Shown here piece by piece: positions 1 to 44,201 of a stretch of DNA of 44,201 bases. The notes under the pieces were generated by a model. That model was not told the DNA's origin, did not search any database, and worked only from the letters and a program-made list of their open reading frames with translations. This stretch comes from Salisapilia sapeloensis CBS 127946 (taxonomy: Eukaryota > Protista > Oomycota): assembly GCA_023334545.1 (NCBI GenBank), contig JAADVB010000160.1, forward strand, positions 1 to 44,201, in the 5' to 3' direction. Every line of letters starts with the position of its first letter. Position 1 is the stretch's first letter. Position numbers and translations under genes: made by a program.

Positions 1-438
1 TCGCAGACCCTTGGTGATGAATTTGTCGTCAAAAGTCCATCATGACAGTAGACGAGAAAAGATCGACACATCAAAGACAATTCTACGAGAAAAAGGTTTG
101 AAAGATTATAGCTCAGCACCTTCAACTGCGCTCGTTCGATACCAGTTATTGATACGATGTATACATGCGAGAAACGGTCGAGATACCAACTTGATGGGGT
201 AGGAGCTAGATATTTTTTACAGAAACCCCTTCAAGACAGAAATAACATATGAATAAAAGTAGTACATAAAGTTTACTATACTTTATCGAATAATAAAAAT
301 AGACTAAATCCGTCGGGGTTTCTCGTACATTCCCTTTAACTTTATTTACGATGTCGGTTGTCATGCCTCTCGCCATGAAGCAAGGTAGTTTAGGTAGAGG
401 TACCAGTTTCGGCTTGATGCTACAGCTTTACCAGTGGT
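1..438 (+). repeat. Left copy of a terminal inverted repeat (~440 bp), unidentified repeat family
   Basis: Reverse complement of 43763-44201. Positions 1-141 are identical. I count mismatches at 142, 264, 290, 295, 327 and 349, then denser divergence and one indel from 372 to ~438. No recognisable coding product. Confidence 0.97.
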
Positions 439-1712
439 TACTGCTAAAAATACGAAGTATGAAAGCTCAATGTTTAAGCCCGACAGAGAAGTTTCTTAAC
501 TAAAGTACTCATTGTCTTCTTCATCGATTATTAAGCCAACATAGACAGCAGATAGAAGCATTCAGTGACGTCGTTTTCTCTATTTTAAGGTCAAGTATAC
601 TAATAAAGTGGTAGGTGTTATTCATGCATGGCTATCCCAAAGATGGATCGTACCGACAAATATTGGAGAGCAAACAAAGCAGAAGGAAAACAGCATACAT
701 AACACAAAGCGAACATTTCTGCATCACAACATGTATTTGAATGTTTTAACCTTGCATTATCAAGAGAATTGTTTATGCAAATTGTGTCATGTCGACTAGT
801 GCACTATCAACTTCACTTGTTCTCACTTGAACAGATCGCGCGCGTTAAATTGTACTCTACGCGCATATGACTCATAAAGTTGATCGAGAATTTCATTTCT
901 CCAAGTCTGTACCTGTTTGCTCCTGCTTTCGCACTAAATAGTCTCGTAGAGACCGTTGTAAATCATCGAACTCTACTCTTCAGATAAGTAGTAGCCAATG
1001 CTAGATGCATTCATGAGACAGACTTAGTGCTCTAACAATTAGGTTCTCTGATATTATCGTTGCGAGAGTATTCAAAAGCTAGGCGTGCACAAATGTGTGA
1101 AGTTACTGATAGTTGGAGGTCGTGTGCAGGAGAACGAAAACTCCAAAGTGAGTTGTTATTATGCTTCCTACTTTCTTCTGCGGTCCGTGCTCGATGCCTT
1201 CGCTACCACTCGTTACTCGCGACATTGGCACGCAGATCGGTCGCGTTCGTGCTGGCTCATCCTGATCGCCAGAAACTCCATTGCGAAATGTCCGTGTTCC
1301 ACGGAATGAGCAAAATAAAAATTATGCATCTCCGGATGCCATGTTTCTGCTCCAGCGATATTCCCGAAACCCGAGCAGAAACTCATTCGGCCCTCTGGTG
1401 GCAGTCACCAGAACACTAAGAGCGCACACAGAAAAGCTAGTTTGGGCCATATACATGACTCGACTGTTGTCATCGTCCGTTTACGAAAAAGGGATTAAAT
1501 ATAAAACGTGCTAACCGTGATGGCTGCAGTCGATGACACATTAGAGGAAAGAAGTGCAGTATACTGAGCATCATAGTCTATTTGATTTTGTACTCTATGG
1601 CAACTTCGAAGGGTCTGATGCTTATTAATCTAATTCGTCGTAAAGTTTTTCAGACTTATCCAACAATAAGCCCAAGGCAGAGTGATCGGTATGGTTTCTC
1701 ATTACTTGGTGC

Positions 1713-1890
1713 CAGTACGTAGTGATTGTTGACAAGAAACAACAGGTCGTTAGCTTTCTAGAAAACCAAATATTGGGCACGAAAACATTGCATGCTGAAA
1801 CTCTTTTCAATATCATAAATAGACGACTATGAGCAGACGAGCGGATTCGACTTTAGCCTTTACATTGCGACTATCGCAGACTCAAGTACT
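1713..1890 (+). mobile_element. Possible decayed hAT-type transposase fragment (frameshifted, with stops)
   Basis: Translation QYVVIVDKKQQVVSFLENQILGTKTLHAETLFNIINRRL, then after a frameshift EQTSGFDFSLYIATIAD. This loosely resembles the hAT catalytic-region pattern RYVD...ERFL...TAETLFN.I...GLD.S...D. Judged by eye only. Confidence 0.2.
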
Positions 1891-3785
1891 CAATTTTCCC
1901 TCGGATATGCTCTAGACATTCTTCTGAAATCATGTTTGTACGGACTTGCAATTTAAAGTCGATTTCCTCGTCTAGATGGTTAAGTATGAAGCAAGGGACT
2001 ACAATACAAGACATTAGTTCTACCATGAAGATACCTTATAACTCTCTTAAAAGCACAAAGATGAAACCTTAGTACTATCGTCCTCTAGCTGTGACTAGAC
2101 TTCAGCCGGTTATTCGACATGCAATGGCACGATCAAATTCTACGTGAATGGGGATAAGAATCCTACGAACTACGATATTAGCTACTTTTCAAGCGCTTCT
2201 GCTTGGCCTCATTCATTGTAGCGATTGTAAGTCACCTCGATGCTCTGCATTCAATTCTACAAGCAAATGTTACGTAAGTGAGATGGGCAATACGAGAAGG
2301 TTCAATGTTAGCTGATTTCAAACCTCTGACGCTTGAGCGTACTACCAATAGAGTCACGTCGCGATCGCCACATGCCTGATGATACCAACTTGGCGCATCA
2401 TAGGCACCTAAAGGTTCACTTATTTGCTTCATCGTTGCAAATTTAACAGCAAATTTGATTCATGACTCATGAAAGCATGCTACAGACCTTTGTAGCCTAC
2501 CTGTAAAGCATTTGCATGCTTAATGTGAACCATTGCAACTTTTTTTTGGCATAGTGGAAAGTTGGTAGTCCAACTTTCCACTGAAGAATAGATATATACG
2601 TAAGAAACATCACTTTGCGTTCGATTGGTCTGTCTTCACTAGATGATGCCAGCATCACGGCTGACTCAGTGAACATGAATCCCCATTGCTCTAGGTCGTT
2701 CATGCTCTGTAGCGGGCCCTTACTGATTCGAACGCTCTCCACTTCTTCTTAGAGTTTACCATTGAATGAGATTGTGCCCTTAACCTTGAACTTTATTGAT
2801 ACTTTCCCGCAGAAGCAACTGCATCGTATACAAATCAAAAACAGAAGCAGATCTTCATGTCCACGTACGAATACGTCTACATCGTCAGGTTGGGCGATCT
2901 GCAAGTGCATGTGGGTTTGCTCGATCCCACTGCAATCAGTCCCATCTTACCAGCAATGCTGATACATTTGGATCAATATACACATCAATCCTACTGTTCC
3001 TACCAGCAACTGCCTATCAAGAAGCCCTCCATCACATAGTTTTTCCCATTCCCTCGAAAGCTGTGAGTTAAAGTCATCTTTACACTTACATTTTCCTACT
3101 CCAGGTTGAGTCCTGGCGGTGAAACTCTCACAAAATCAGAATCGATCTAAGTTACCATATGACGTGCATACCGCGGGGCTTTCGAAGGTACACATCTCGG
3201 AGAGATCGCGTCAGCTGATTGTTCATTCGCAAGGGTGGTACTTATTCGCGTTCACTGTCCTATAGATCGGCAATAGAATTTCTAGTAAATAAGATATTTT
3301 CATTTAAATAAGCTCAGCATATTTTGTTTTACTCTTGTTACTTATACATTTGCCCATCTCGCTTAGAGGTGTACAAGAATACGAGTAGTGAAAACAGGTA
3401 GTGAATCAGACGTCACAGATCGATGTCGTCGCATGTGCCAGATCCAACTGTATACATTGTTGTCTCTACCCCTTCCTACACTTGAAGATAATTGAAAAGT
3501 ACCTGTGCGCATCTTTAATAGCGTTAATCTTTGCTGAGTTCAGACTGTAGTGGTGTAGACGAGAAATAGTATCATGTAGATGATATGAATGTCATAAAGC
3601 TATTGATACGACTACAGATACTTGTGCGCTTTCTTTTCATCGAGATGCCCATCTTCTTGTCGGTGGTGTCACGGAATCGATATGCGTGACGACGATCTGA
3701 CTTCAAGCCGACTGTTTCGGAAATGTCGGGCAGAACCAGGACGAGGTCTTCCAAGGGTGCACTTTTGCAGCCTTCGTCCAGTTTG

Positions 3786-3801
3786 GCTCATTCTCAAATT
3801 C
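3786..3801 (+). promoter_or_regulatory. Oomycete INR+FPR core promoter of the FBT gene
   Basis: GCTCATTCTCAAATTC matches the oomycete consensus GCTCATTYBNNNWTTY at all positions and ends 36 nt before the ATG at 3838. Confidence 0.75.
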
Positions 3802-3837
3802 GCTTTCGACCGCTCAAGCCACACTTGGAACGCAGCA

Positions 3838-5571
3838 ATGGCCGGATCAACTTTTGACGGCATGAGAGGCGGCGACAAGGCCGAGATGGCTGCCCGTATC
3901 TCGCATGCTAGTGATGTGTCAAGACAAAAGGATGTGGCTGCCGGCTATGAAGAAGCCAGAACTCCTGAACGTGATGCGGTTGTCCGTCACGAAATCCAAG
4001 CTGATGGCGCTCTTCGTCCTGGTGGAAAGCCTGAAATCTTCAGCAGGGACTACATCGGTGTCCCTATCCAATACGCAGCCGTCGGTCTCATCTACGGTGT
4101 GCTACCCGCTACTCTCTATCCGTTCATCCAGAACTACTTGAACTCCGAAGGTACGGTCTACGTTGCTGCTGAAGCTCTTGTGACCATGCCTTGGTCTTTC
4201 AAGGTCTTCTACGGTATGCTGTCCGACTGTGTCCCGATCAAAGGTTACCGTCGCCGCCCGTACATGATCATCGGTTGGACGGTTTGTCTGATCATGCTTA
4301 TTGTCATGGCAGCTACTCCAGTTGAGAAGCCGTACTACCTCGAGCCTTCGGACCGTGATATCAAGCCTGAAAACTACGGTGATTACCCTGGCATCGAAAA
4401 ACGTCTCAACAGAGTTGCTGCTACCAGTGGTGGCAAGTACATCGTCCTCATGATGCTTGCTGCTGTCGGCTACTTGATGGCCGATGTTGCTGCTGACTCT
4501 TGCATGTCTGAGCTGGCTCAGCGTGAACCGTTGGAATCCCGTGGTAAGGTCCAGTCGGCCATCTACACCACTCGTACGGCGTTTCAGATTGTGGGTATCT
4601 TGTTGACTGGCTTTGCTTTCAACGGTGAGGACTACGGTGGTGACTTTAACGCATCTCTGACGTTCCCGCAGCTCATGCTCGTTCTTGCTTGCTGCCTTGC
4701 TCCTGCCATTCCGTGCACCTGGTTCTACATTAAGGAAGAGAAGCGTGAGCGTATTAACTTCAAGGGATACATGAAGGACTTCTGGCGCTTGCTCAAGACT
4801 CGTGCGATCTACCAGATCATCTTCTACAACTTCTTCTCGTCCTTCTTCAATACGTTCCAGTTCACGGCATCCAGCCCTGTAGAGTCGTACATGGCTGGCG
4901 TGACACCGATCAACAGAACCATTGCCCAAGTGCTCGGACAAGGTACCTTCATGGCTGGTATCATGGTCACTAGTCGCTGGGGTCTCCACTGGAACTGGCG
5001 AACGATGACGGTGATCACAGGCATTATCGTCATGGTTATCGATTGCACGATCACCATGGTTACGGTCTGGGACGTCTTGCGTAGCCAGTGGTTCTGGCTT
5101 GGTCCGCCGATTGCCGTCCAAGTCCCGTACGGTGTCCAGTTCATCATCGGTACTTATGTGACCGTCGAGATGGTGGAAGATGGTAACGAAGGTATGATCT
5201 ACGGTATGCTCACGACCGTATCCAACCTTGCCCAGCCGTTTGCCATGACCGTCTCCCGTAACATCAACGCGTCTTGGAACGTATCCAATGAAGATGTCCA
5301 GGGCGACACGCGCGAGACACGCCTCAACATCACACGCCAGGTGATGCTCATGTACGGCATGCAAGTCGTGTCGTGGTGCTTCTTGGTCTTCTTGCCTCGC
5401 CAGAAGGCCGAAACGCAAGAGCTGAAGCGCAAGCAGAACGACAGTGCCCTCATCGGTGGTATCACTCTCTTCTACATGGCCTTCGCACTCATCTGGTCCG
5501 TGATGACCAACTTGATGGGTATCTTCCCCGAGACTGGGTGCCTTCAGATTGCTGGTGGTACTGGATGCTAA
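3838..5571 (+). CDS. Folate-biopterin transporter (FBT/BT1, MFS) family, oomycete type, 577 aa, intronless
   Basis: Multiple TM helices, motifs PWSFKVFYGMLSDCVPIKGYRRRPYM and DVAADSCMSELAQREP..RGKVQS, and C-terminal CLQIAGGTGC. ATG at 3838 lies just downstream of the INR/FPR. Confidence 0.9.
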   Translation: MAGSTFDGMRGGDKAEMAARISHASDVSRQKDVAAGYEEARTPERDAVVRHEIQADGALRPGGKPEIFSRDYIGVPIQYAAVGLIYGVLPATLYPFIQNYLNSEGTVYVAAEALVTMPWSFKVFYGMLSDCVPIKGYRRRPYMIIGWTVCLIMLIVMAATPVEKPYYLEPSDRDIKPENYGDYPGIEKRLNRVAATSGGKYIVLMMLAAVGYLMADVAADSCMSELAQREPLESRGKVQSAIYTTRTAFQIVGILLTGFAFNGEDYGGDFNASLTFPQLMLVLACCLAPAIPCTWFYIKEEKRERINFKGYMKDFWRLLKTRAIYQIIFYNFFSSFFNTFQFTASSPVESYMAGVTPINRTIAQVLGQGTFMAGIMVTSRWGLHWNWRTMTVITGIIVMVIDCTITMVTVWDVLRSQWFWLGPPIAVQVPYGVQFIIGTYVTVEMVEDGNEGMIYGMLTTVSNLAQPFAMTVSRNINASWNVSNEDVQGDTRETRLNITRQVMLMYGMQVVSWCFLVFLPRQKAETQELKRKQNDSALIGGITLFYMAFALIWSVMTNLMGIFPETGCLQIAGGTGC

Positions 5572-7528
5572 ATCATTTAGGCATAACTGCCCGTGCTCTG
5601 CCTCTACCTTTGTCGAGGTGAAATGGACCAGATGCAAGCATATTGCTTCTCATCTCTTTCTAAACACCGACCATAACTTCACAACGACTTGGGCCCTGGT
5701 GTGTGCGTAAGAACTTTGATGCGTAGAAATGACATGACGAATACAACCGTTTTATCATATCCATGTTTAGATCCAGACTTTTTCTGTCTTCTTACTATAG
5801 CATTTAGGAGTGATCTAATGCCATTGTGTATTCCAAAAAGTGCTCATAGAAGACGATATCCTCTCATCCATGCACTGAAGTAGAGCTTACGTGGTATTTG
5901 CTTTTACAGCTGCGTAGTTCTTCTACCTTATGCATGCACGTGACTTTTAAACTCGGATACATTCTGGTCATAGATTTGTTGATCGCATTTGTGTGGTAAA
6001 TTGGGGTGCCAATGTTAGTTGTTCAGCAGAATAAGGCGTAATACCAAATATCCTAGAGATAGAGGCTATGGTTGAAGCCTCCTTCATACCATTCTTTATC
6101 TAGAAGGTATTTAATCGCGCTGTTTTGTCTACATTCACGCTAGCGTTATCCAAAGCTCACAAACGCAATGCCATGATGTTTAGTGTGCTATTTGAGGTCC
6201 AAGTCGAGATGCCTTGTAAAATAGATTATGGAGCTATCGAATGCCATAGTAGGAAGTAACTATCCGTTTTGGATTTAGGATGCTAAACAACATAGGCATT
6301 TCGACACAAAGGAGAACTATCAATACAGCCGATGTGATCGTGATCGTGGTCAACTTTATTCGGCAGATCCTCACATAAATATACCTTGTAGCAATGACCT
6401 AGAGCATACAACGCTTTGTGCACCTTCAAGGAACTAGCTTAAGATGTTTGACGTACAATTGAGTCGTGTTTGCGATGAACAACGCTTCGGTAAAATTGTA
6501 AATTCGTCTCTTGCAAATTTATTCATGATAGTCGAATCGGCAAACTGCATTCGTTGAGGATTGCTGATTCGGATTAGCTGCCTGACATGGGTAACCTAGC
6601 GAAACACTTCGATGTAACTTTCCTATCATAGCTAGAATACACAAGCAAGTGGTTGGTGCTGCCGATGAAGACGCGAATTCATATTCTTGGTCTATGTCTG
6701 TCTTCGTCTTCAATGCAATCAGGAGGAAATGATCTTCGAGAAGACTTCCAGTCACATCTGGTGCTCGAGATGTGCACATTTGAAAAAGCGCGCGAAAGAC
6801 TTAGTGAGCTCTTCGCTTTACTAGCGCTATTGAGCTCTTCGATATTATTTCGGAACAGGCACAGTACAGTTGTGGCCGGAATAATTGAGCGATATGTGTG
6901 ACTCATACTGTACGCCGTCCCACTAAAATGCCGAGGAGCTCAATAGTGGAAGTAAATCGAATGCAACTTCAATCTAAAGGACTTCCGGGGATACACCACG
7001 ATACGCTGGACACTATGACCCACCAAAATATCACAGAGGAGCTGGCGATAGATGTGAGTATCAATGGAAAGGTGGATAACGACGTACGAGTAGGATGGAC
7101 CAGCAAAGACTCAGGTACTGATTCCTATTACAGTGTTTGTGCGTTTGTTCACATAATGCATATAGCTTCTTCCATAATATCCGATTATCTGCTCAATGAA
7201 CACATCTTTAAATACTATCCTGTTAATGAAGAAGAAGCTGAAGTTGACAGTTACCATGCAAAATGTAATGCCTCACAGTACCAATCTTCGATTCACATTG
7301 CTCGTTAACTTGACAGAGCATCTCCAACAAATACGCTACTAACAAGAAACTAATAACTAGACAGAGTATCTCCTGCTTAAGCATAAACTTCAGGCATGCT
7401 CCAAGTTCACACAGCACCCGAAATGAGACCCTACATCGTCGTGTTTCGTACTTGATCGATTCTATGTAATTTTCTTAAGTACGACCTGGACCACCCTTCG
7501 TGTATAAAAGCATACAAATCGGCTAGTC

Positions 7529-8639
7529 ATGCTCCGGCGGGTAGCTCGTGCCTTCTCATCGACAGCACGTGGGACATCTGCGACTGTAAATGTTGTCGCC
7601 AATGCCGATACGAGTCTAAAGAAGGATGTCAACAGAGAAACGCTGCTTTCTCAATTGGAAGAGAGCATTTCGAGCAAGCAAGCGACGCGAGCATTGGCTG
7701 TGTTTGACATGTTAGCACCACCGCCAAGTCATACGACAACGCAGAAGCTCGCGATTCTACTTGCAAAGCGTGGAGATCGATCATTTACACTACGGGCTGC
7801 GTCTATCCTACAGAATGTGCTACAGTATGTCCACAATTGATAGTGATCATATAAAGCGAGCAAGCTGTACTCATTGCTGATGTACTAGAGCACCAGAGTT
7901 AGATGCAGATGACTACACAAGGCTGGCCTCCATCTACGTCGTAGACGCATGTCTGCGACACCGTCTACTGCGCAACGCTCTTGACGTACATTTCTTACTA
8001 GAGATTCATAGATTTTATTACTTATGCGTTCCATAGGTCCATGGAGATGCTTCCAAGCATGGCACTCAGCTCGATCTTCCAGCCTACAACTCTTTAATCC
8101 AAGCATTAGTTGATGCTGGAAAAGTAAATGAGGCCAGAGAGTTACTGGAAATGGTCGAAATTAAGAACGAAGTCGCACCTACGGAAGAAACTTACTTCCC
8201 AATTTTATACGGCCTGGTCGCTCGATACAATTACCCTGAGGTCGTGGACTTACTCTCGAACGGACGTGCTCGTGGTGTTTCTTTCACTTGGGAGGTACAT
8301 CGTATATATTCGTCTCTAGTCGATGCAAGTGTTTACGTTTGAGATGATCATGTAGACGTACGACCCTCTTGTCGAGTTAAGTGAGCAGCAGCAGCACGAG
8401 GAAGACGAGGAAGCCAATTTTGACGAAATCGAACAGTTCTTAGACTACGTGAATCGTGCGATCGAAGACGATGGTGTAAGTCGACGTTACCATAACTCTA
8501 TTTTGAATGGGAATAACCCAAGTTTCCAATCTAGTTGATGGCTGAATTTGCTGCCGAAATCGATCTGGGCGACGACGATGATAGTGACGATGACCTGACA
8601 CCAGGAGCTAGTGATGATGAGGATCAGAAACCGTACTAA
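7529..8639 (+). CDS. Pentatricopeptide-repeat-like protein with probable mitochondrial presequence, 291 aa, 5 exons
   Basis: Exons 7529-7824, 7889-7985, 8037-8294, 8356-8475, 8535-8639 join in frame. Presequence-like MLRRVARAFSST, PPR-like motifs AYNSLIQALVDAGKVNEARELLEM and TYFPILYGL, acidic C-terminus. Confidence 0.75.
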
Positions 8640-8760
8640 TACAATGTCCAACTCTCTCTGCACCTACTCTCTTTCCATTTCTACCTTGTCAAGTACATGC
8701 TAATAGATCTATTTTTGGAATGTACGTTAATTCTATCAGACATTAGCAGTCTGGTGGAAA

Positions 8761-11115
8761 ATGGAAGCTAATGTCGTAGGTGACACACTGTCCAAGGGTG
8801 AACGAGTAAAAGTATACTGTCGTGTTCGGCCGTTCCTCTCTCGAGAGCAGGAAGGTCTAAGCTATGAGGAGTACGCTCACCAGCAAGCAGAAGCTACTTT
8901 TTCCAAAACTATAGAGCCCGAAACCAACGGCGTGGACGACTCGAACACGTTTCTGACTGACAAAGAAAAGCAGGTCCATGGCCTTGGGCAATCTGTTGTA
9001 TCTATCCAAGATGATAAGCAGACGCTCCAAGTGTCTGCAGTAGATAATGCATCGAAGACATTCTGTTTCGATTCTAGTTGTGATGAAACAACGTCCCAGT
9101 CGGAGATGTATGACCTTGTAGCTGCACCAGTCGTTCGAGACTTTCTCGATGGTTATCACGGTGCTGTCCTAGCATACGGCCAAACAGCGACAGGGAAGAC
9201 GTTCACGATGGTTGGTCAAAACGACGCTGTCGAAGGTGACAATCGAGGTATCATCCCACGAGCTCTTGAAGATATCTTCGAGGTAAGCTTATCTTTCTCA
9301 TCACTATGCGTATACTGTGCATAATTACAATGGAATGGTAGGCTGTAGGCTCGGATCCGCCACATGTGAAAACGACTATCGCTTTAAGCTATGTGCAGCT
9401 ATATTGTGAACGGATTTTTGATCTTTTAGATCCGTCGATACCTCCGAACTCCATTACCGTCAAGGAAGACTCCGAGTATGGTGTTTATGTGGATGGAGCG
9501 TCCATGACTAGTGTCACAAATGCCCATGAATGTTTAAATCTATTTACTCGTGGCAACGAGAACCGAGCTGTGGCGAACACGGGCATGAATGCACAATCCA
9601 GTCGTAGTCACGCCGTCTTGACACTTCGACTTGAACGTCGAGAGTATCCGACAGTCTCATCTGGTGTTGAACCAACACAACAAGTTCGAATTAGTCACCT
9701 TCATCTTGTGGATCTCGCTGGCTCTGAACGTGTGAAAAAGACAAAGGTATATGGTCGACACGCGCGAGAATTGCGAGCAATCAATTTAAGTTTATCAGCA
9801 CTTGGCAACTGTATTGCAGCTTTGAGTAAAAGACAAAAGCATATTCCCTATCGCGATAGTAAATTAACTAGAGTCCTTCAGTCAAGCCTTGGTGGAAATG
9901 CTAAAACAGCGCTCGTCGTTACGATCTCTCCTTCCATCACTGAACGCAGCGAGACGGTATCTTCACTTCAGTTTGGTCAAAGAGCACGAGAGGTTATCAT
10001 CAGGGCACATCGCAACATCATGTCTGTACTGGACTACAAGTCGCTATATGAACACCTCCAGCAGCAATTAGATGATCGGGAACAAGTACTCAGAGATCTT
10101 GAATCCGAGTTGGCTGACCAGAAAAGCGAGACGAAAAGTTGTCAAGATGATGTAGTGAAAGCTCAGATTCGAATTCAACATCTAGAGTTTGAGCTTCAGT
10201 CAGCCAAGACATCCCTGCTACTCCATCAGCGGCAGTTGACACAGCAACAAGGAGCCGAGACCGCTGCTGCGTTTACACAAGAGCTCGAACAACTTATTCA
10301 AAAGCATGAAGAAGACGTGAAAGTCGTTCAAGAAAAGTGTAATTTGCAAATAGAAACATATAAAAAGTTGGCAGAAGGAGCTAGTGAAGAATGGCATGAA
10401 GTTGAGAACGAATTAGTCACGTCCAAGGAGCAAGTCTTACAAACGTTGCAAGACCTCAAGGACTTCAAGAAACGGTATTATGAACTAGAAGAAGAGTCTA
10501 CGGGTCGGATAGCTGAGCTCTTACAGCAAGAGAAAGAGTTGGAACGAGACTTGCAAGCACAAAAGGAATTTATGGAGACAGAGACGCGCCGAAAAGATGC
10601 TGAAATCGACCAGCTTACCCGAAAGGTATTTTTACTGAACAAAGTTTCTCTTATACTACTTTGCTGATATGTTATGGGTGTGCAGCTAGAAGGCGCAGAA
10701 GCTAAGGGCAATCAACTAGAATCTCGGATGGAGTCGGACTGCGTACCACGAGAAATGGTAACTGTCAACCCAGTATATCGTTCCAGTGGTAACTAGCGGC
10801 TTACATGAGCACTCGATATAGGTCGACAAGATGGAAAAGTTATACGAAGGTGCTATTGCAAAACTGCAAGACCGAGTGGGGAAATTGGAAATCAAAGCTT
10901 CAGCTCATAAAGAGAATGCATCTGCAGCAACCTCTGGAAGCAATCAAACGTCAGATCGAGTTCCAGTGTCAAAAAATCGTTTACAAAAACCTGGAAGAGT
11001 AGATGTCCTTGGAGCGAGAAGCGCCGTACCGGGGAAGGCGCTACCACAAGTTGGTCGAATCATGCCACCCGCAAGGGTGAATAACTCTAGACCAGACAGA
11101 TCGAAATTTTACTAA
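8761..11115 (+). CDS. Kinesin: N-terminal motor domain plus coiled coil, 723 aa, 4 exons
   Basis: RVKVYCRVRP, P-loop GQTATGKT, switch I SSRSH, switch II DLAGSE, HIPYRDSKLTR. Introns 9283-9341, 10626-10685 and 10758-10821 keep the frame. Confidence 0.95.
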
Positions 11116-12414: not shown

Positions 12415-12693
12415 AAATACTCAATGTCGACATTTCTATTCTATTTGCATCCATGTACTCATCAAGAGCTCTATCTACCAACGCAACATTCTTATGATAT
12501 ACCACGTCGATATGAAATGCTAGTAGAAAAGCTAAAACTACCCCTTCCGAATTCTATCCTGTTTTTAAATAACTTCGGTCCTCTCGACCATACTCACTTT
12601 CAGTCAAATCGGATCACAATCCGAAAAGGACAAAAGCCCGCGCAGATTCGCGCCAATCGACTGCCACCCGCCGTCGATCGCCCTTGCCACGCA

Positions 12694-12702
12694 GCTCATT
12701 CC
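12694..12702 (+). promoter_or_regulatory. INR-like element upstream of the Rad21 gene
   Basis: GCTCATTCC ends 8 nt before the ATG at 12711. The FPR half does not match. Confidence 0.45.
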
Positions 12703-12710
12703 TCACAAGC

Positions 12711-29005: not shown

Positions 29006-29051
29006 ACGTAGGAATCGGATCTATCTATTACGTTTAATTGACCTCGAGCGA

Positions 29052-33580: not shown

Positions 33581-34177
33581 GGAGATAGTCGTGTGGCTTG
33601 ATACGAGGGAGGGAGGAATTCAAATTGTACGAGTAGGTGCACCACGAACGGGAGGATGTACAAGGAGATTGACAGTGATGGGACGTACGGAGGCTACTTG
33701 ATCCGACTGACAATAGGTACGGAGATGGAAAGCCCTCGCGTACAGACCTCTCCTGCGTTTGATGGAGGGAACGGATTACTTGGAGTAAGCCAGTTCATAC
33801 GCTTTCGCGATGGACACTAGTCCGTTCCAATACGCTTTGCTTGCCCCATTTCTTTTGGCACGGATGTTTGCACCGACGCAGTTTTCCAAAAGTGGGGACT
33901 TTTGTACTCTTTATGCCAAAAGCGGAAAAAATGTTCAAAGAGGGGAGCAAGAAAGTATTGAGCAGGGCGTATCACTCATGACCATTTCGATCCTTGCAAG
34001 TGGTGAAATCAGCCTTGTACATGCCCACTTTTGGTATGTTTCCACGAGTACAGGTCCTGACTTTTACCACGTATGGAAGATGCAAAATAGTCCCGGTTTT
34101 AGCACCTTTTGTCCAGTTTTGTCTATCGCAGTACAATTGTCTCCACTTTTGGAAATACGCTTCGAAGGATTGTAAAA

Positions 34178-35248
34178 ATGGACATCTGCACGGCACACGG
34201 GAAATTAATTCTCGATGGCACCACGTTCTATCTGAAGGGAGCGAGTTACTTTGGTCTGGAAAGTGATATTCGAGTACCACATGGGTTGTGGGGAGGTAAC
34301 GACTCGACCAACATTGCTGCCATCGCAACGTTTCTCCGTCAAAATAAATTTAATGTCGTTCGACTGCCTTTAGCAGCGGATGCAATCGATGCGAATGCTA
34401 GTATCGATACCAACAAGATTGGCAATGAAAAGGAGCTTTTAGAGAAGTTTCACGGTAGAGAACTAAAGTATCTAGACATGATCGATCATACTGTCAAAGT
34501 TTTTGGCCAGCATCATGTACTTGTGCTCTTGGACATGCACGTCCTTCACACCGGTGGACCCATTTCCGAGCTATGGTATGATCCTGCTGATCCAGATCTC
34601 GTCCAAAGAGCATGGAAGACACTGGCAACTCGGTTTTCTACTGCATGGAACGTGATAGGAGCCGACGTGATGAACGAGCCTCATGGAGCTGCTACATGGG
34701 GCACGAATGACAAAGCGACAGACTGGCGTCTTGCAGCTACTCGTCTTGCATCCACCATCCACGCTGTGTGTCCTCGATGGTTAATCTTCGTTGAAGGTAT
34801 CCAAAATCCTCAACATGCCCAGCCTCCATCGTTCTGGGGCGAAAACATATCGGACGCTCAAGAGCATCCGATCCATCTCCAAGTTTCCAATAAACTCGTC
34901 TACAGTCCACATGTCTACGGTCCAAGTGTCTCTCACCAGCCTTACTTTGATTCCTCCGACTATCCTATGAACCTACCTAATATCTGGCATGAACACTTTG
35001 GTGTCTTGGCGGGAGACACGCCGATCGTCATTGGCGAGTGGGGAGGTTCCTACAACTCTCCACCAGATCAACAGTGGCAAGAAGCCTTTGCAGAGTATCT
35101 CGAAAAGAGTCAGATCGGATCCATCTACTGGTGTGTCAACCCCAACTCTGGTGACACTCAAGGTCTCCTCCAAGACGACTGGCAGACACCACGTATCGAC
35201 AAGCTAGCTGTCTTAGATCGTTTTAAAAGTACAAACATCGCGCCATGA
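34178..35248 (+). CDS. Glycoside hydrolase family 5 (endoglucanase-like), 356 aa, intronless, no obvious signal peptide
   Basis: GASYFGLE...HGLW, NVVRLP, VLLDMH, acid/base MNEPHG, YSPHVYGPSV, nucleophile IGEWGG, YWCVNPNSGDT.GLL.DDW. Confidence 0.95.
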   Translation: MDICTAHGKLILDGTTFYLKGASYFGLESDIRVPHGLWGGNDSTNIAAIATFLRQNKFNVVRLPLAADAIDANASIDTNKIGNEKELLEKFHGRELKYLDMIDHTVKVFGQHHVLVLLDMHVLHTGGPISELWYDPADPDLVQRAWKTLATRFSTAWNVIGADVMNEPHGAATWGTNDKATDWRLAATRLASTIHAVCPRWLIFVEGIQNPQHAQPPSFWGENISDAQEHPIHLQVSNKLVYSPHVYGPSVSHQPYFDSSDYPMNLPNIWHEHFGVLAGDTPIVIGEWGGSYNSPPDQQWQEAFAEYLEKSQIGSIYWCVNPNSGDTQGLLQDDWQTPRIDKLAVLDRFKSTNIAP

Positions 35249-35282
35249 ACAATTCATTTCCAACTCTAGTTATGCATGCAAA

Positions 35283-37091
35283 TTAGTCCAACGACACGGC
35301 CGTGCTGAGGTCCAAGTGGGTCAATCGTGCCGTCCCGAGCAGTCGTTCTGGTAGTTCCTCCATTTGCTGTGCCTCGAGCACGAAACCCATGTCAATCACC
35401 AGTTTCTTCGTGTACCCTGCCACAAGCCCAACGACTCGATTTGCCACAGCAGACGACGCAATGTCGACACCTAGTTCAAAGTACTGTTCCCCTCGATGAT
35501 ATACCTGTCGTAGCTTTTTCCCCAAGATCGTCGGTGTGTTCCCGACAGCTTGTCGCACGATAAAGCTACCTTCGACGATGCACGGAATGAGTTTAAACCT
35601 TTCATCTCGGAAATCATCCGAGCCTTCGAGGAAGTCTTGAAGTAGCTCCGACGTCGGTGATCCGTCCGTCAGGAGCGACGGATGAGGGAGCTGGTAGTAC
35701 ACGACTAGATTCAATTTGCGAGAGCCAGGGACCATAAAGTTCATGACAAATGTAAACGGCATCGTCGTCCCGTCCTGCCTATGTCTAGCTAATTCTTTCT
35801 GTACGACATTATCCGGTCGAGCGGCAATGTGGTCAATCGTCTTGGACGTCTCGAAGAGGTCCATGCCGACCATTCGGAAGAGTGGAGGTGCAGAAGGGAT
35901 CTTACGTCTATCAGTCAAATAGTCCGGACCACGCACTAGTACGGTGCTACCGTCTGGTTCTGCCCACATCGCTTTCGGGACACTCGTGGACAATTCCTTT
36001 AGTGTCGACACGGACGCTGACTTGTCGACTGTCGACTGGATTTCCCCCGTCGAAGAATGATGACTAAGTACTCCTGCTGCTTCTTCAGCAGATGAAATGA
36101 CAGCAGTGAACTCTTCCGAGATATTTGGTGTCACGTACTTGCGTGCTTCCATGACTTCCTGTAGACCAGACAAAACTAGTATATGTGGCTTCAAGTACTG
36201 ATACAAACGATTGAAACGAAGGAGGAGACTGCTTTCCCACCCTTGTGGATCCAAGTGCACGACGTTCGTGACGAGAGATGTCGAGTCGTCTGTGAGACTA
36301 ATGGGCAGTTCACGAGGCGAGATGATGTAGCCACTGCCTTTGCAAGTCGCACGGACCATGTCTTGTGTCGTGGGACACTCCGGATGGACAGTGCTTTGTA
36401 GACAAATGACGTACGACCCGTCGTCCGTGCGTCGCCAATATCGCAGCAAACACGCGTCTCGAGGCTTGAGCCACCTAGAAACAACTAAGTCGACTAGTAC
36501 ACAGATCTCTTGATAGCTAATTACGTCGGCCAGAGCCACATGGGCTTGTAGATGAGTCGAATAATGTCCGAGTGATCATCGATCGTCTGTATAGCATACG
36601 CATTCTCCACGGCTGTATCCCACCTAGAGCATACCTTAGTACCTAGTTGAGATGTATACGATACAAAAAGATTACATGGGATAGTTTTCGAGGTTCATGA
36701 GGTACATGAAGATCTCTGAGGGAGAGCCATCGATGACTTGTACCGTCTTAAAGCACGGAACGTCTCTCCTCGCACGTACGCTCGACATGGACCACAAGAC
36801 GCCGACCAGGACGAGGAAGGCTAGAACCAGCCCACCACCAAGCCCAGCTCCTCCGAACAAGCCAGCGACAAACGAGATACCAGCAGCAGAACATGCCGAT
36901 ACGAGTGCTCGATTCAGCGGCTCGGCAAAGCTTTCATGTCCTTCATCCTCCTGCCAAATTTGCATCCCGGCAAATAGGTCGACAACCTTCCAATTTGCCT
37001 GGAACATCGCCCAGGACCTTTCCAACTCACTCAAGAGCTTGAGCGTATCGGACGGCTCAGCGTTCATTTTCGCTGGTGTAATCGCTGCCAT
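35283..37091 (-). CDS. EDR2-like START plus DUF1336 (EDR2_C) protein, 568 aa, 3 exons
   Basis: START segment PRDACLLRYWRRTDDGSYVI and DUF1336 motifs W.EPD...V.VRGPDYL.DRRKIPS and FRDERFKLIP.IVEGSFIVRQAVG.TP.ILG...YFELGVDI. Introns 36624-36675 and 36475-36524. Confidence 0.9.
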
Positions 37092-37341
37092 ATTTATGAT
37101 CTCCTTGTAAAAGATACTTTCGACAATCAAATGCCACTTGCGAAATGGCTCCACCAGTCAGGATGTGCAAGAGTCGACAGAGACTCAGTCGAGGACGTCG
37201 CACGAGAGCTCTCGGGCTGGTCGATCAAGAATTAGAGGTAGAGGGATCGACAGATGTACCGTGCAAGAGAGCATACGAAAGACATACGATTGTCGAGATG
37301 TAAACTATATGCCAACCTATAGTCTACCTATGCCCGAAAAG

Positions 37342-40311
37342 CTATAGCTTGGACGACCTCGGACGCTCGCGTTCGGGGAAGAGCGGCATTTGTCGTCGGA
37401 AGGCTGTCGCGTCCTTGATGAGTACGGAAGAAGAGGCTTGGGGGGTTAGAGACACGGCTGCTGCGACGCCAACGTCTTCCTTTTCACCTTGTACCTCCAC
37501 AAGTTCGTGCTCACATCCATACAATTGGATACTAAGCTTACTCCTTTCCTTTCCATCCGCACTGATATACGTATCAAAGAGGTCAATAATATCTTGACGA
37601 TGCAATGTCCGGACGACCGTCGCAAGTTCCTGCCGACGGTTAAAGTAAAACATTTCCGTCGCAATCTCTCGCCACAATCGAATGTACTCTTCCGACTCCC
37701 GCTTTGGTTTCTCCACGAGAGACTGCACCACTGCTTCTACTTGTTTCTTCCACGTCTCTTCTGGCATCGACAAAATCCAATTTCGGAATTCAAGTAAGAA
37801 ACTTTCCACTCGACTATCCAAGTACATCGGATCTCCGACAGTCGATTGCACGATGATACGAAGGTATTCGATACCCTCTTGATGCATACTTCCAGAAAAC
37901 ACAATGTATCCTAATTGCTCTTGCGTTCGAAGCTGATTGAAGCACGGTTCTTTCAGTACATGTGCCAGTACTTCGAGAGCAGCTCGTTTCTCCAGTGTTT
38001 CCTGGCCGACTTGGAAAAGGACACTTAGTGCCGAGTTCTTGTTCTGATCATTCCAATCCTTCCTTCGATACGCATACTCAGTCCCGGCATGTAGACGCAC
38101 GATACGAGGTCGAAGCGACTGGCTTGGAAGCAGCGGCCAGCTGCCTTCATGCTTGGCATCGAAAGCGAATTGGGACACGACACCGTCCAACAGGTCCTTA
38201 GCATGATGCTCTTGGATGTTGCCATAACAAAAGCCTTCGACAAAAACCTCTTGCAAAAGGCTTTGAGCATGCAATGCCAAGTCTTGGACGGACATGTGTT
38301 CAATCGCTTGGACTTTATCCTCCACGCTCCATTTAGACGCATCTAGGACCAGACCAGCGCTGTACACCGTGTGCTGATACGGTTCTTCCATAAAAAAGTT
38401 CTCGTACAAGCGCTTCGTCCGGTCCTTGACTCGATCAAACACATTTTCCTTGAACTGAAACGCAGGTGAAGTCATGTTCAGCAACTGCTTCAACACTCGA
38501 TCGAGTAGCTTGTCTAGTTTCTGAGAGAACCCACCGACGTATAGCTCAATCGCACGCGAGTTGAAAGATATGTCATAGTCCATACCAGCAAGCTCTGCGT
38601 CGTAGCTCCATTCAGTCAATTCGTCCTTGAGATAGCGAACGAAGAGACTAGTGAGGACACCATGACGAGGTGTTGGAGACACCATGGGCGAGTAGAATAG
38701 AAAAGACAAGGATAAGCGAGGTTTACGAAAGTATGTGTCCGCTTTGAACCACAGACGACACTGGTCGTCGTGTCGGACTTGCAAAGGAGCTTCTAGCACG
38801 TACTCACCACTCACCTCGGTGAACGGAGATGACGGTACGACGATATGGAAGTCAGTGCAGATGAGGTCGTTACGAGAAGGTAGATGCAGCGCTGTGTTTA
38901 TGTCTGGATGCTGCCACTTGGATACGAGGTCTGATGGGAGTTTCGAGTAGCTGTATGGAGTCTTGTACCACGTCTCGGCTAGATCCGTCGTCTCTTGGAA
39001 CTGTTTGCTCACCATGGTAAGACGCACACGCTCCGGGACGAGTAATTTCAGAATCTCTTGTGTCTTCTGACTGTCGTACTTGAACATCAAGTGTGGTCCA
39101 GCGATCACTAGTTCCTTCGGGTACTTGTGTAGGTTACCAGAAAGCGAATGGACGTAGTTAATCGGTCGTTCTTTGCTTTTGAATCGGAATTGTGTCGCGT
39201 GCAAGTCTCGAATTTCATGGTACATCCATTCCTCGATTGGAGCAGCACGCTGGAGCATCGCGAGGTACTGGAAGACAGCATTAGCAACGTCATAACACTT
39301 TTCAATCCCGACTTCCGTCGCGTCGATGTTCACGACGAACATCCCCCAGTCTTCGTGATCACGAACCAAGCCGGCGTAGAGGCCATTCGCTAGTTCCTGT
39401 TGTTTCAAGTAACTTAATAGAGACCCAGCGCCTTCATGGCCAAGGAGGTGCGATAGAATACGACTCGGCTTGCTCATGTACTCATCGTAGAGTGACGGCG
39501 TGGGCCATGCAAGCTCTATGACACGCAAGTCTTTCACGGGCGTCACACGTACTTCCGTCTGGAGGCGAGACGAATCGAATGGGAGGACACCGCCGAACTC
39601 TGGGGGAGATCTCCCAGAAGTCGGGACGCTCGTGAAGAGATTTTGCGCCCATGACTTGAGCGTCGTTAAGTCCTCTTGTCCGTACAGCACGAGCTTCATG
39701 ATACTCGCCGAGTAGTACGTCGCATGGAAGTCGAGCAGCGCGTCTCGCACGTGATCGCCGCCTAAGGTGTGGATGTTCCCTGTACCGAACTTGTGGAAGG
39801 CATGGTCCGGATTTGCCAACGACTTGAGGAGCTGATACAGTCGACGATGATCGTTCTGGAGGTTCTTACTATGCTCCGAGTCGACTGCACGGCGTTCACG
39901 GTCCGTCGCACTCGGTGTAAAGAGCGGCGCGACGAAGAACTGGGCAAAGCGATCTAGTGCACCGAGAAAGTGTTCTCCAAGCACGTCGAAATAAAAGTTC
40001 GTGTGCGTCGCGGACGTCGCAGCGTTGCTACGACCTCCGTGTGCACTTAGGAACTGCTTATAACTGTTCTCATCAGGGTATTTTTCCGTCCCGAGGAAGA
40101 GCATGTGCTCACAGAAGTGCGCTAGTCCAGGCAAATCGTCCGGATCGCTCTGATGCCCGACGTGGACGTCCATGGACGCCGCAGACTTTTCAGAGTACGG
40201 ATCGGAGACCAAGAGCACTTGGAGTCCATTCTCCAGTAAAATACTTTCGTACTGACGATCATCTAGCGCCGAGATCTGAATGTCATGGCTCATACGTACT
40301 GCGTCCGACAT
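37342..40311 (-). CDS. Insulin-degrading-enzyme-like M16A metallopeptidase, 989 aa
   Basis: Inverted zinc motif GLAHFCEHMLFLGT, LGHEGAGSLLSYLK, and FNQLRTQEQLGYIVFS. Likely start at ATG 40311. Confidence 0.95.
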   Translation of the reverse strand: MSDAVRMSHDIQISALDDRQYESILLENGLQVLLVSDPYSEKSAASMDVHVGHQSDPDDLPGLAHFCEHMLFLGTEKYPDENSYKQFLSAHGGRSNAATSATHTNFYFDVLGEHFLGALDRFAQFFVAPLFTPSATDRERRAVDSEHSKNLQNDHRRLYQLLKSLANPDHAFHKFGTGNIHTLGGDHVRDALLDFHATYYSASIMKLVLYGQEDLTTLKSWAQNLFTSVPTSGRSPPEFGGVLPFDSSRLQTEVRVTPVKDLRVIELAWPTPSLYDEYMSKPSRILSHLLGHEGAGSLLSYLKQQELANGLYAGLVRDHEDWGMFVVNIDATEVGIEKCYDVANAVFQYLAMLQRAAPIEEWMYHEIRDLHATQFRFKSKERPINYVHSLSGNLHKYPKELVIAGPHLMFKYDSQKTQEILKLLVPERVRLTMVSKQFQETTDLAETWYKTPYSYSKLPSDLVSKWQHPDINTALHLPSRNDLICTDFHIVVPSSPFTEVSGEYVLEAPLQVRHDDQCRLWFKADTYFRKPRLSLSFLFYSPMVSPTPRHGVLTSLFVRYLKDELTEWSYDAELAGMDYDISFNSRAIELYVGGFSQKLDKLLDRVLKQLLNMTSPAFQFKENVFDRVKDRTKRLYENFFMEEPYQHTVYSAGLVLDASKWSVEDKVQAIEHMSVQDLALHAQSLLQEVFVEGFCYGNIQEHHAKDLLDGVVSQFAFDAKHEGSWPLLPSQSLRPRIVRLHAGTEYAYRRKDWNDQNKNSALSVLFQVGQETLEKRAALEVLAHVLKEPCFNQLRTQEQLGYIVFSGSMHQEGIEYLRIIVQSTVGDPMYLDSRVESFLLEFRNWILSMPEETWKKQVEAVVQSLVEKPKRESEEYIRLWREIATEMFYFNRRQELATVVRTLHRQDIIDLFDTYISADGKERSKLSIQLYGCEHELVEVQGEKEDVGVAAAVSLTPQASSSVLIKDATAFRRQMPLFPERERPRSSKL

Positions 40312-40539
40312 GCTTCTCGTTTCGCTTTTTTTATATTCTACCGGACGCTCCGGAGGCGTAAGGCGTGGTGTGAAGCGTTGTACGATGTACGATCTCCCGT
40401 TACACGAGGAACATGGAAGGTTTGAAGCGGTAAAGTAGAGAGACAAATAAGGAGAAACAAGTAGACTATAGTGTCTTTATTCATGCATATTCCTCGACGC
40501 AAAGCATACGACAGGAGAACGATAAGCAGAAATGGAGAA

Positions 40540-40612
40540 GCGCGGTTGGCGTAATCGGATAACGCGTCGGTCTTATACCCCGGAGATGCGGGTTTAAGTC
40601 CCGCATCGTGCA
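40540..40612 (+). tRNA. tRNA-Ile (anticodon UAU), intronless, with atypical positions
   Basis: Cloverleaf: acceptor GCGCGGT/ATCGTGC, D stem GCGT/ACGC, anticodon arm TCGGT-CTTATAC-CCCGG, T arm GCGGG-TTTAAGT-CCCGC. Deviations are T at position 56 and a T31-C39 mismatch. Confidence 0.75.
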
Positions 40613-40755
40613 ACTTAACCTAGTACTAGTCTCCTACCTCAACTGCATACACCCATGGACTCCGTGTCCGATCGATTCAAAGTATCTCTTGCCAATATCC
40701 ATTTCCTTCCTACTTGTCGTCGACTAGCACTATGCCCAAGACTCATCCTCCATCT

Positions 40756-42053
40756 CTACGACCGTTTAGCAAGACGACCAAAGCGGACGACAACAGGTCG
40801 CGGGGCTTCTCGCAATCGATATAGAATCCGAGATAATCCCATGCCTGTCACTTCCTGTCCATTCACAGCGAGGATGACGACACCGTTCTGGATCTCCGGA
40901 TAACGTCTCGCTTCCGAGCCTTCAAAGCATTCCTTAACGATCGCAAACTGCTTACTTTCATCCGATCCGAGCTTCATGCCGATCGCCTGCTGCTTAAACA
41001 CAATATCAAAGACGTTTTCCAAGTGATTTAACGGACTCTCTTGACTCGAAGGACGTTGGCGAGGTGGTGTCTTGGGCAAATGAGCAGGAGACATGGACGC
41101 GGAGGAGCTTCGAGCGGGAGCTGGTGCTGGTGGCTTCTGAGCTTGCTCAATCGAGCTTGAAGTAGAGATAGGTGGACGTGGAGGTTCGACTCGACTGTCC
41201 TCCGGGTACGATCCAGAGCTGCTGATAGATGGACTGCGCTGCGGTGTCGACTGTCGCTGGCTGCATGTGCATTTCGTCGGGAGTTTATGACATCGAGAGC
41301 AGGATTGCCAGTCTGCAGGAGAGTCTGCAGGAGACGGAGGGATGGTATCGGCATCGAATGTGCCTTTCATGTAGCTTTCCATGAGCGATAGAAAGTGTTC
41401 CTTCTGCGCTTGCTGTCGACGCACGGTGGCGTGTGGTGGCGTCCGTTTGCCAATGAGTGTAAAGGCGTAGAGCTGCTGGAAGAAGAGGCCATTAGTGGAA
41501 TCGAGAGACTCATCGGACATGCTGCCAGGGTACGATCGCAGCCATGGGAACATGGCACTATGGATTCATGAAGATGAGCAAGCGATAGCGTAGGAAATAG
41601 ACCGACGTACTGTTTGTTTGTCAAGTCAGGTGTCTGTAGGAGTGTCCTGGCATCAATGACGTCCATGGGAGAAATGACTTTGCCAATAGGCTCCTGTAAA
41701 TCGATGACTAGCATGGGCATGAGCATATGCAAGTGTATCGGACTGAGATGGGTGCAGACCTTGGCGACGAGTGCGATTATAAAGCACTTCGAGCTCATCT
41801 TGTAATGCATCTGGGTTTTGCTTCTGAAGGCTCTTGAGATTCGTCCGATAGATCTTTCTCGCTTGCTGCAGTAGCCATTGCGCCGGGTGTCGAGGGTCGC
41901 ACGGTATATCGTACGTCTGGGTTTTTACAAAGAGTCTATTGCATGTGATATTGAGCCGCAAGTACTATTGTTCCTCGTGGGTATAGAGTACCGGACGGTG
42001 ATAGCATTGTCATCAACAGCATCGTTGGACCCGTAGCGACCGTCTCTCATCAT
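40756..42053 (-). CDS. Hypothetical protein with C-terminal PDZ-like domain, 378 aa, 4 exons
   Basis: C-terminal FDIVFKQQAIGMKLG...VKECFEGSEA....IQNGVVILAVNGQEV...RLREAPRPVVVRF. Introns 41936-41991, 41708-41759 and 41558-41610 give one continuous frame. Confidence 0.8.
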
Positions 42054-42210
42054 TGTTCTTTCGCGACGATCTTCCTACTGTCCTCTTCCGCCTCGATTCG
42101 TCCGCTCAAAAGACACAAATATCCCATGGAAAAGATACGATGGATGAAAATAGCCATTTTACAACCGACTTTGTAGCGGAAATAGCACTTTACACACTAT
42201 CTGGACAGCT

Positions 42211-43474
42211 ATGACTAGCATGGCTAGTGGGACGAATGCACACTTGTATCTGGGAGAACTGGAGGATTTAGAGGCTTCACAGCAAAGTTATTATGCAGAC
42301 GGTCAAGTACTGGAGCTCCCGGTTATTCATTTGCCACAGACAGTAATATGTATAAACGAATATAAGCGATTGCGTTCTAAGTTTTATTGCCATTGCCTAC
42401 TAGATCATCTTTCCTGGCAGCAATTTACCACTACGAGCTCTTTCAAGTCATGTGTCAGACACCCTTCGCCAGCGACTCCAGTCCCGTCAAAACTTGATCG
42501 CAGTTATCAATCAATCGGTACCTGGTTCCTTTGATCTAGCTGCTGGTCATGCTCCTAACACATTCCAGTATATAATTGAAGACGATGACGAACGATATGG
42601 ATCAACAATACGCATCGAACGAATGAGCATCGAGGAAGAAAGCGTCGTCGTCACTGGTGTAGCCAAACAGCGCTGTGTTGCGTTGGATACGATGTCATCG
42701 ACAAGCCTCATAGGCCGCGTGCAAATCCTTCCGACGCATTCACCACCCCGTCTTCCATTTTCTCTCCTACCATACGCACACTATGACACGCCCGCCAAGC
42801 GTGAAAAAGTTTCTCGTCGTTTTTGTTTCCTCCGTTTTCCTACTCACGTCCAACCCGATGCCCACTTCCAGTTCGATGCCTACGCGCTCATCGATCGCAT
42901 CCAAAAACTTTGGATTTCTTCCTTCCAGTTACAACAAATCCGCAGTGAACAAGGTGACACGTCCTATCTTGACGCTCCTATCGGCATTCCATCAAGCGTC
43001 ACGAAAGACCCCGTTCGTTTCGCCTACTGGGTCGCATCCGCTCTTCCGTTGGATCATTCCCAACGTCGCGAGCTATTCAAAATCGATTGCATCGTTCAGC
43101 TACTTCGTCAGGAGCTAACTTTGTTGCAGCACATGCAGGATGAATTGTATTGTGAACGCTGCAATGAGCACCTCGCAAGCACCGAACAGCTCTTTCTCAT
43201 GTCGTCTGCTGATACGTTTGTGAACCCTCATGGGTTTGTTCACCAGCTTCTTACTTTTCGAAATGTACTCACCGATCGTCTGTACTCGACCGATGAATTC
43301 AGTACGCAAGAAAGTTGGTTTCCCGGATACTCTTGGAGCATCATCCACTGTCGCCGGTGTTTCGCGCACCTCGGATGGAGATTTGATCGTACGGACGAGT
43401 CTCTCCATCCAGCTTGCTTCTACGGTTTCCGACAGACATCACTTACGCCATTTGGGGATCCAGAAGAGATGTAG
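42211..43474 (+). CDS. CRBN: Cereblon-like protein (LON N-terminal domain plus CULT domain), 400 aa, 2 exons
   Basis: HLYLG...LPV...IIFPGSNLPLR across intron 42343-42403, FAYWVASALPL...R.ELF, and CULT motifs CERC, FVNPHGFVH, SWFPGYSW, CRRC.AHLGWRF. Confidence 0.93.
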
Positions 43475-43762
43475 AGAGGGATAGTAGAGTACATGTGTTG
43501 CAGTTCGGGAGCTATTCACTTAATATATGGTACTTGAGGCAAATGCTCACTTGCGACAGCAGGCTCAGAGTTTAGCTTGCACAAAAGGTATTGATAGAAA
43601 CCCAGTATACTGTGCTAGATTGGTGCGAATGCCAAAGATGTTATCCCAGGTGACGTTTGGAGCCACGCATATACTACAATTTCTGTTCTTATAGTGCTTA
43701 CGAGGTGGAAATGACCGAGTTACGGAAGTGATGTATCTGAACCGAGACGAAGTTCGAAAAGT

Positions 43763-44201
43763 ACCACTGGTAAAGCCGTGGCATCAAGTCGAAACAGATA
43801 AATTTATCGAAATCTACATTGCTTCATGATGAGAGGCATGACAACCGACATCTTAAATAAAGTTAAAGGGAATGCACGAGAAACCCCGACGGATTTAGTC
43901 TATTTTAATTAGTCGATAAAGTATAGTAAACTTTATGCACTACTTTTATTCATATGTTATTTCTGTCTTGAAGGGGTTTCTGTAAAAAATATCTAGCTCC
44001 TACCCCATCAAGTTGGTATCTCGACCGTTTCTCGCATGTATACATCGTATCAATAACTGATATCGAACGAGCGCAGTTGAAGGTGCTGAGCTATAATCTT
44101 TCAAACCTTTTTCTCGTAGAATTGTCTTTGATGTGTCGATCTTTTCTCGTCTACTGTCATGATGGACTTTTGACGACAAATTCATCACCAAGGGTCTGCG
44201 A
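43763..44201 (-). repeat. Right copy of the terminal inverted repeat
   Basis: Reverse complement of 1-438. The last 141 bases (44061-44201) are an exact reverse complement of 1-141. Confidence 0.97.

Follow-up and report, generated by a model that had tools for sequence, protein, structure and literature searches.

Inverted ~1.3-kb copies around a 43-kb core of ordinary oomycete genes: a contig whose ends are probably those of its assembly graph

The window, i.e., the whole stretch of 44,201 nucleotides analysed here, is an entire contig (C435, positions 1-44201) of the Salisapilia sapeloensis assembly, which comprises 22.4 Mb in 1,365 contigs. Its core (439-43762) is single-copy and holds ordinary nuclear oomycete genes. 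Searches against Pfam identify a BT1 transporter, a kinesin, Rad21, an EF-hand protein, GTP cyclohydrolase I (GCH1), a REV1-type Y-family polymerase, Myb, ribosomal protein S3 (rpS3), DTW, La, FYVE, SAE2/CtIP, a mitochondrial carrier, a DEP-C2 kinase, a GH5 cellulase, START/EDR2, an M16 peptidase, PDZ and cereblon; a tRNA-Ile also lies in the core, and the genes likely have introns. These assignments agree with a sequence-only reading of the same DNA, which had listed rpS3, Rad21, REV1, GCH1 and cereblon as ordinary gene content. The same reading saw no mobility gene, and this holds as well: Pfam finds no transposase, integrase or recombinase domain in the window ORFs of at least 150 amino acids. 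The host is an oomycete without a close sequenced relative, and the best match of the cereblon, from Pythium, is approximately 40% identical. An exact-protein look-up with the product of the PDZ gene returned no record, and comparison of the cereblon-like protein with the JGI metagenome contigs returned no related locus.

The core is flanked by two arms in opposite orientation, the left one at 1-438 (minus strand) and the right one at 43763-44201 (plus strand). The inverted repeat is real and lies exactly where it had been proposed. Positions 1-391 are 97% complementary to 43811-44201 and, after a 1-nt indel, positions 389-438 are 80% complementary to 43763-43812. A chance origin of the pair is excluded because the repeat is too long; nothing else in the window is repeated over 40 nt or more. 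The arms had also been said to differ from each other. They do, by 10 substitutions in 142-391, 10 among the 50 positions of 389-438 and the 1-nt indel, though bases 1-141 are the same in both. Mismatches begin at base 142 and recur at 264, 290 and onward, and no later identical run reaches 141 bases. Divergence between the arms increases inward, toward the core, from 0/141 through 1/122 and 9/128 to 10/50 (0%, 0.8%, 7% and 20%, respectively), beyond which there is no similarity.

Outward, the repeat extends past both ends of the window into a second contig of 1,037 bp (C385). The left junction k-mer (1-141), at which the unitig ended, is the reverse complement of the 141 bases of the right junction k-mer (44061-44201) and also, at 100% identity, of C385 positions 1-141. 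C385 in turn ends in 141 bases whose reverse complement forms the end of C689, a contig of 102,062 bp. Because three exact coincidences of 141 bases occur at this locus (between the two ends of the window, between the window and C385, and between C385 and C689), we attribute the contig ends to a de Bruijn graph with k = 141. Each end of the window is an exact k-length copy shared with its neighbour, and the first difference falls at k + 1. In the literature, a maximum k of 141 is a commonly reported setting of MEGAHIT, with 73 papers naming it, and this is the program which we infer from the value of k to have been the assembler; a search for papers on k-length inverted contig ends gave nothing useful. 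At its end, C689 carries genes with Cation_efflux/ZT_dimer (zinc transporter), CBS and MORN domains. Its last 1.5 kb, compared with the assembly, reveals no diverged continuation of the repeat past C385. The outer flank of the right copy has no match in the assembly, and a 26-mer taken at the far end of C385 is without an exact match in the JGI metagenome contigs.

Together, the collapsed C385 node and the diverged inner 297 bp of an arm give the repeat unit a minimum length of 1,334 bp. The window contains only its inner part, 438 bp from the left copy and 439 bp from the right, inverted one. C385 contains an ORF of 70 amino acids with a signal-peptide-like N-terminus and a tail rich in Arg, Trp, Asn and Asp. 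This ORF is directed away from the core, being on the minus strand beyond the left end of the window and on the plus strand beyond the right end, and the arms in the window correspond to the distal part of its 5' flank, between roughly -143 and -581 relative to the ATG. On the plus strand of C385, the INR motif (YCAYTYY) is matched only once, at 224-230, which places it 54 bp ahead of the ATG at 284, and it is followed at 233-239 by a match to six of the seven positions of the FPR motif (motif definitions from PMC3599244). The signal-peptide-like sequence and the promoter-motif match suggest that the ORF is a putative gene. Its product has no homologues in Pfam, among 1.84 billion protein representatives or in the ESM Atlas, and no paralogue was found in its own genome. 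The unit has no terminal inverted repeats, there are no internal inverted repeats in C385 and the arms, and neither the arms nor C385 contain RNA genes (no rRNA, no tRNA). In a sequence search of the 22.4-Mb assembly, the two arms and the collapsed node were the only copies; for C385, a copy number of two would be expected.

These observations are probably best explained by a two-copy inverted duplication that was collapsed during assembly. The window would then be a complete unitig of a k = 141 de Bruijn assembly, lying inside a normal chromosome between inverted copies of about 1.3 kb. A small gene would have been duplicated as inverted ~1.3-kb segments that flank the 43-kb core, each copy being transcribed away from the core. 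The outer ~1 kb of both copies would be identical or nearly so, and for that reason would have been collapsed into the single node C385, while in each copy just the 297 diverged inner bp would stay joined to the unique core. Because only this inner part stayed on the core, both contig ends would stop at one and the same 141-mer in opposite orientation, giving the graph a “lollipop” shape. The proposed layout runs from C689 through the reverse complement of C385, the window and C385 to a second flank, which the assembly lacks and which was presumably lost as a short or unbinned contig. Identity within C385 may mean near identity, small bubbles having possibly been popped by the assembler. The claim that a 43-kb block is bracketed as a unit has to be given up in this layout, its borders being the points where an assembler with k = 141 stops and not the borders of an element. 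As a caution for this assembly, a contig with inverted-copy ends should be taken for a collapsed inverted repeat in the k = 141 graph rather than for a bounded element.

Plastid genomes assemble as LSC, IR and SSC nodes for the same graph reason. In such collapsed inverted repeats, as here, the two ends of a unitig carry one k-mer in opposite orientation, the overlap with the adjoining node is exactly k bases (141 in our case), and a unique segment loops on the repeat node. We see no difference in kind; the present example is a nuclear 1.3-kb duplication, the inner part of which has diverged enough to stay on the loop.

Two inverted copies on one molecule, here one unbranched contig, are what defines the locus as a segmental duplication. 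Identity between the copies is non-uniform with a decaying edge, divergence rising from 0% to 20% inward, which is the pattern taken to indicate gene conversion. At a uniform divergence of 3.2%, the probability of no difference in 1,037 bp would be approximately 2e-15. The gradient thus suggests that the copies have been kept alike by gene conversion. Gene-converted low-copy inverted duplications are well known, e.g., the arms of sex-chromosome palindromes and the inverted low-copy repeats that mediate inversions by non-allelic homologous recombination (NAHR). Like the present locus, they have two inverted copies on one molecule with a unique spacer, high identity in the centre with decay at one edge, and the potential for inversion by crossover. 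In contrast to them, the arms here are short (~1.3 kb) compared with the 43-kb spacer, conversion is deduced from a gradient in one genome rather than from a cross-species comparison, and no inversion has been observed. The locus is an ordinary feature of an already known kind. Biologically, it is a minor case of inverted gene duplication in an oomycete, the copies probably having been homogenised by gene conversion.

Compatible with the collapsed duplication, though unlikely, is an invertible segment, i.e., a core that is present in both orientations across the population or the haplotypes as a result of NAHR crossovers. At least 1,037 bp of the outer arms are identical or nearly so, and the identity gradient suggests that gene conversion is ongoing. 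Intermediates of homologous recombination may be resolved as crossovers, which here would invert the core. However, one assembly graph fits both orientations, and Pfam shows no recombinase or invertase domain among the window ORFs of at least 150 amino acids or among five ORFs from the adjacent 10 kb at the end of C689. A programmed inversion switch, which would call for a site-specific recombinase nearby, was rejected on this result. Nothing indicates a dedicated mechanism, and any inversion of the core would be passive homologous recombination between the arms. It is tempting to hypothesize a recurrently inverting block, in which outward-facing genes for orphan secreted Arg/Trp-rich peptides are homogenised and crossovers maintain an inversion polymorphism, but we regard this as distinctly improbable. 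Even if both orientations did exist, they would amount to no more than a modest inversion polymorphism of the NAHR type.

Large inverted repeats that give rise to flip-flop isomers are known from organelles, namely plastids and the mitochondria of some oomycetes. They too flank a single-copy region, and in both settings equimolar isomers could in principle arise. Here, in contrast, the region between the repeats consists of nuclear housekeeping genes with likely introns, the unit has an oomycete promoter motif, the repeat lacks rRNA and tRNA, and the locus is in a chromosome, adjoining C689. An organellar inverted repeat was therefore rejected, given the nuclear-type genes and the lack of RNA genes in the arms and C385.

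It is very unlikely that the copies are two non-autonomous mobile elements, whether MITE-like or forming the arms of a composite transposon, by which the block could be moved in trans. As in composite transposons and MITE pairs, two inverted copies enclose a block with cargo genes, and the cargo of the unit itself is an orphan ORF without homologues. Against this, the 22.4 Mb of the assembly contain just two copies and hence no multicopy family, terminal inverted repeats are absent from the unit, and no transposase domain occurs in the window ORFs of at least 150 amino acids. The inner edge is fuzzy, fading gradually from 97% to 80% to none where a sharp boundary would be expected, and a core promoter motif of the oomycete type precedes the ORF, as it would a host gene. 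A dispersed non-autonomous element, one of the options offered earlier, is left unsupported by the search of all contigs, which returned the two arms and the node, and by the fading edge and the missing terminal repeats.

Even more doubtful is a giant palindrome with C689 on both sides (C689-R-core-R'-C689 inverted), where the break between C385 and C689 would be a spurious or allelic branch. In its favour, the 141-mer at the far end of C385 is shared with C689 only. Such a palindrome demands arms of at least 102 kb without an assembled difference, whereas the inner 297 bp of the repeat differ by 1-20%. In addition, a junction in a de Bruijn graph requires a third branch, and the one implied here is most simply the missing second flank.

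We attach scarcely any weight to a small linear chromosome, the arms of which would be shared subtelomeric repeats with telomeres just beyond. The same inverted sequence does occur at both ends, as in subtelomeres, and one outer flank was not recovered. On the other side, however, the outward path leads through C385 to the 102-kb C689 with its ordinary genes and without telomere repeats, which contradicts this option of the sequence-only reading on that side. The reading was right that the window lacks a TTTAGGG telomere array, and such arrays are absent from the whole assembly too. Subtelomeric families are normally common to several chromosome ends, whereas this repeat is found nowhere else in the assembly, and k = 141 accounts exactly for the contig ends.

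Just as remote is an assembly chimera, in which arms from different loci or strains were misjoined to the core; its fragmentation into 1,365 contigs and the inverted ends seen on several of them speak for this, but a unitig is an unbranched path, with overlapping 141-mers tying each arm to the core. A fold-back artefact, which would produce identical copies, was rejected, as the arms differ by 1-20% and by an indel. Three unrelated contig ends were also sampled: one overlaps a lollipop contig by 85 bases, one shows no overlap, and one is a dispersed repeat. The second lollipop in the same assembly is C56, a contig of 1,765 bp, the 85-bp inverted ends of which are equal to positions 1-85 of C434.

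The two ends of the window, which is the whole of contig C435 in an assembly of 22.4 Mb and 1,365 contigs, form an inverted repeat. Positions 1-391 are 97% complementary to 43811-44201, and past a 1-nt indel positions 389-438 are 80% complementary to 43763-43812. Inward of 438 and 43763 the arms have no similarity, and besides them no further repeat of at least 40 nt was found in the window. The sequence-only reading, which placed the arms at 1-438 and 43763-44201 and held that the two copies differ, was correct on both points. It also described a 43-kb block bracketed by these arms. The inverted duplication is real, ordinary and low-copy, of a kind already known, but the bounded, bracketed look of the block is produced by the assembler.

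Three exact coincidences of 141 bases meet at this locus. The arms are identical over bases 1-141 and have their first mismatch at base 142; the start of C385, a contig of 1,037 bp in total outside the arms, is the reverse complement of window 1-141 (100%); and the contig beyond it, C689 (102,062 bp), ends in 141 bases that match the final 141 bases of C385 in reverse complement. From base 142 inward, the arm mismatches (142, 264, 290, 295, ...) are always spaced by less than 141 bases. These coincidences mark the unitig junctions of a de Bruijn assembly made at k = 141. A contig end is therefore the point where the copies match over at least one k-mer, and is not set by the end of any biological element. 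The option “--k-max 141” is named in 73 papers and is the largest k in common use with MEGAHIT, presumably the assembler here. It is also the default of that program.

The outer part, over which the two copies are identical, is collapsed into C385, which makes the graph a “lollipop” with the layout C689(+), reverse-complemented C385, C435(+), C385(+) and a second flank. Another lollipop in the same assembly is contig C56 (1,765 bp), whose inverted 85-bp ends are identical to C434:1-85; its overlap of 85 bases, not 141, hints that the assembly used several values of k and completed some contigs at a smaller one. For a junction to exist in the graph at C385:1037, a third branch must join there. 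Most simply this is the outer flank of the right copy, which was found neither in the assembly nor in JGI metagenome contigs and was presumably lost as a contig shorter than about 1 kb or excluded from the bin. That C689 flanks the window on either side, as part of a giant palindrome, is very unlikely: the arms would have to be flawless over at least 102 kb, beside an inner edge with up to 20% difference.

Going inward, the divergence of the arms is 0/141, 1/122 (0.8%), 9/128 (7%) and 10/50 (20%), after which similarity ends. Collapse into C385 over its other 896 bp requires that the copies match exactly there, or that any differences were isolated variants merged by the assembler. Given a uniform divergence of 3.2%, the computed probability of zero differences over 1,037 bp is about 2e-15; this value and the gradient together argue against a recent, uniform duplication. 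The pattern in this one genome points instead to an older duplication with a decaying edge, in which the gene-bearing parts have remained alike, with gene conversion as the simplest explanation. Such conversion would imply that the arms interact, and since homologous recombination can act on inverted sequence that is identical over about 1 kb, flipping of the core (439-43762) by crossover between the arms, as the earlier reading proposed, is physically possible. However, the domain search finds no recombinase in the window, and we consider flipping improbable, at most a passive inversion polymorphism arising by non-allelic homologous recombination. Both orientations of the core yield the same assembly graph.

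The full repeat unit of this older duplication, the arm part together with C385, is at least 1,334 bp long (1,037 + 297). The sole plausible gene in C385 is a 70-amino acid ORF at 284-496 on the plus strand. Its N-terminus resembles a signal peptide (a hydrophobic core, then AQ/EE) and is followed by a short acidic stretch and a tail rich in Arg (14), Asn, Asp and Trp, within which there is a 27-bp internal repeat. Speculatively, this composition is reminiscent of Arg/Trp-rich antimicrobial peptides. The oomycete initiator YCAYTYY (Roy et al. 2013; PMC3599244) has a single plus-strand match in C385, at 224-230, 54 bp upstream of the ATG, and two bases downstream of it is a 6/7 match to MWTTTNC, the motif of the flanking promoter region defined in the same study. 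These matches weakly favor the ORF being a real oomycete gene. It has no Pfam family, no match at E ≤ 0.001 among 1.84 billion protein representatives, no usable neighbor in an Atlas search and no paralog found in its own assembly. In both copies the ORF is directed away from the 43-kb core, so that window 1-438 and 43763-44201 form its distal 5′ flank, at approximately -143 to -581 from the ATG. No RNA family was found in the unit. The suggestion that the arms are dispersed copies of a non-autonomous element is unsupported: only two copies exist in the assembly, terminal inverted repeats are lacking, the inner edge of the unit is fuzzy and the promoter motif is of the host type.

The last 10 kb of C689 encode a Cation_efflux/ZT_dimer zinc transporter (E 4e-41), a protein with four CBS domains and a MORN protein, and this end, beyond C385, is ordinary chromosomal DNA. 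A small linear chromosome is accordingly contradicted on the side that can be followed, where the outward path enters these genes, and no telomeric sequence supports it.

The core holds only ordinary nuclear genes and one tRNA-Ile(TAT) (40540-40612, plus strand; ARAGORN; Rfam 57.8 bits), flanked by M16 peptidase and PDZ-domain genes. The absence of transposase, integrase and recombinase domains holds in a search of window ORFs of at least 150 amino acids. TTTAGGG arrays are absent from both the window and the whole assembly. Tandem repeats are limited to two trivial ones. The cereblon-like protein has its best matches in Pythium and Globisporangium at 38-42% identity, so this oomycete has no close relative among those sequenced. 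Adjoining the left arm, 3 kb (439-3600) are ORF-poor and AT-richer (approximately 41% GC versus 48% for the window) and unique in the assembly save for two short matches of 79-80% (approximately 2813-2966 and 3402-3471) to C462:4010-4723, minus strand. At 4102-5637 (minus strand), in the most GC-rich, AT-skewed part of the left half, the strand opposite the BT1 transporter gene carries a 511-amino acid open frame without a Pfam family, which codon bias in that gene has probably produced as a side effect. A kinesin motor domain extends over two adjoining plus-strand ORFs (8761-9324 and 9366-10667; profile positions 1-113 and 123-327), consistent with either a short intron or a change of frame separating the two.
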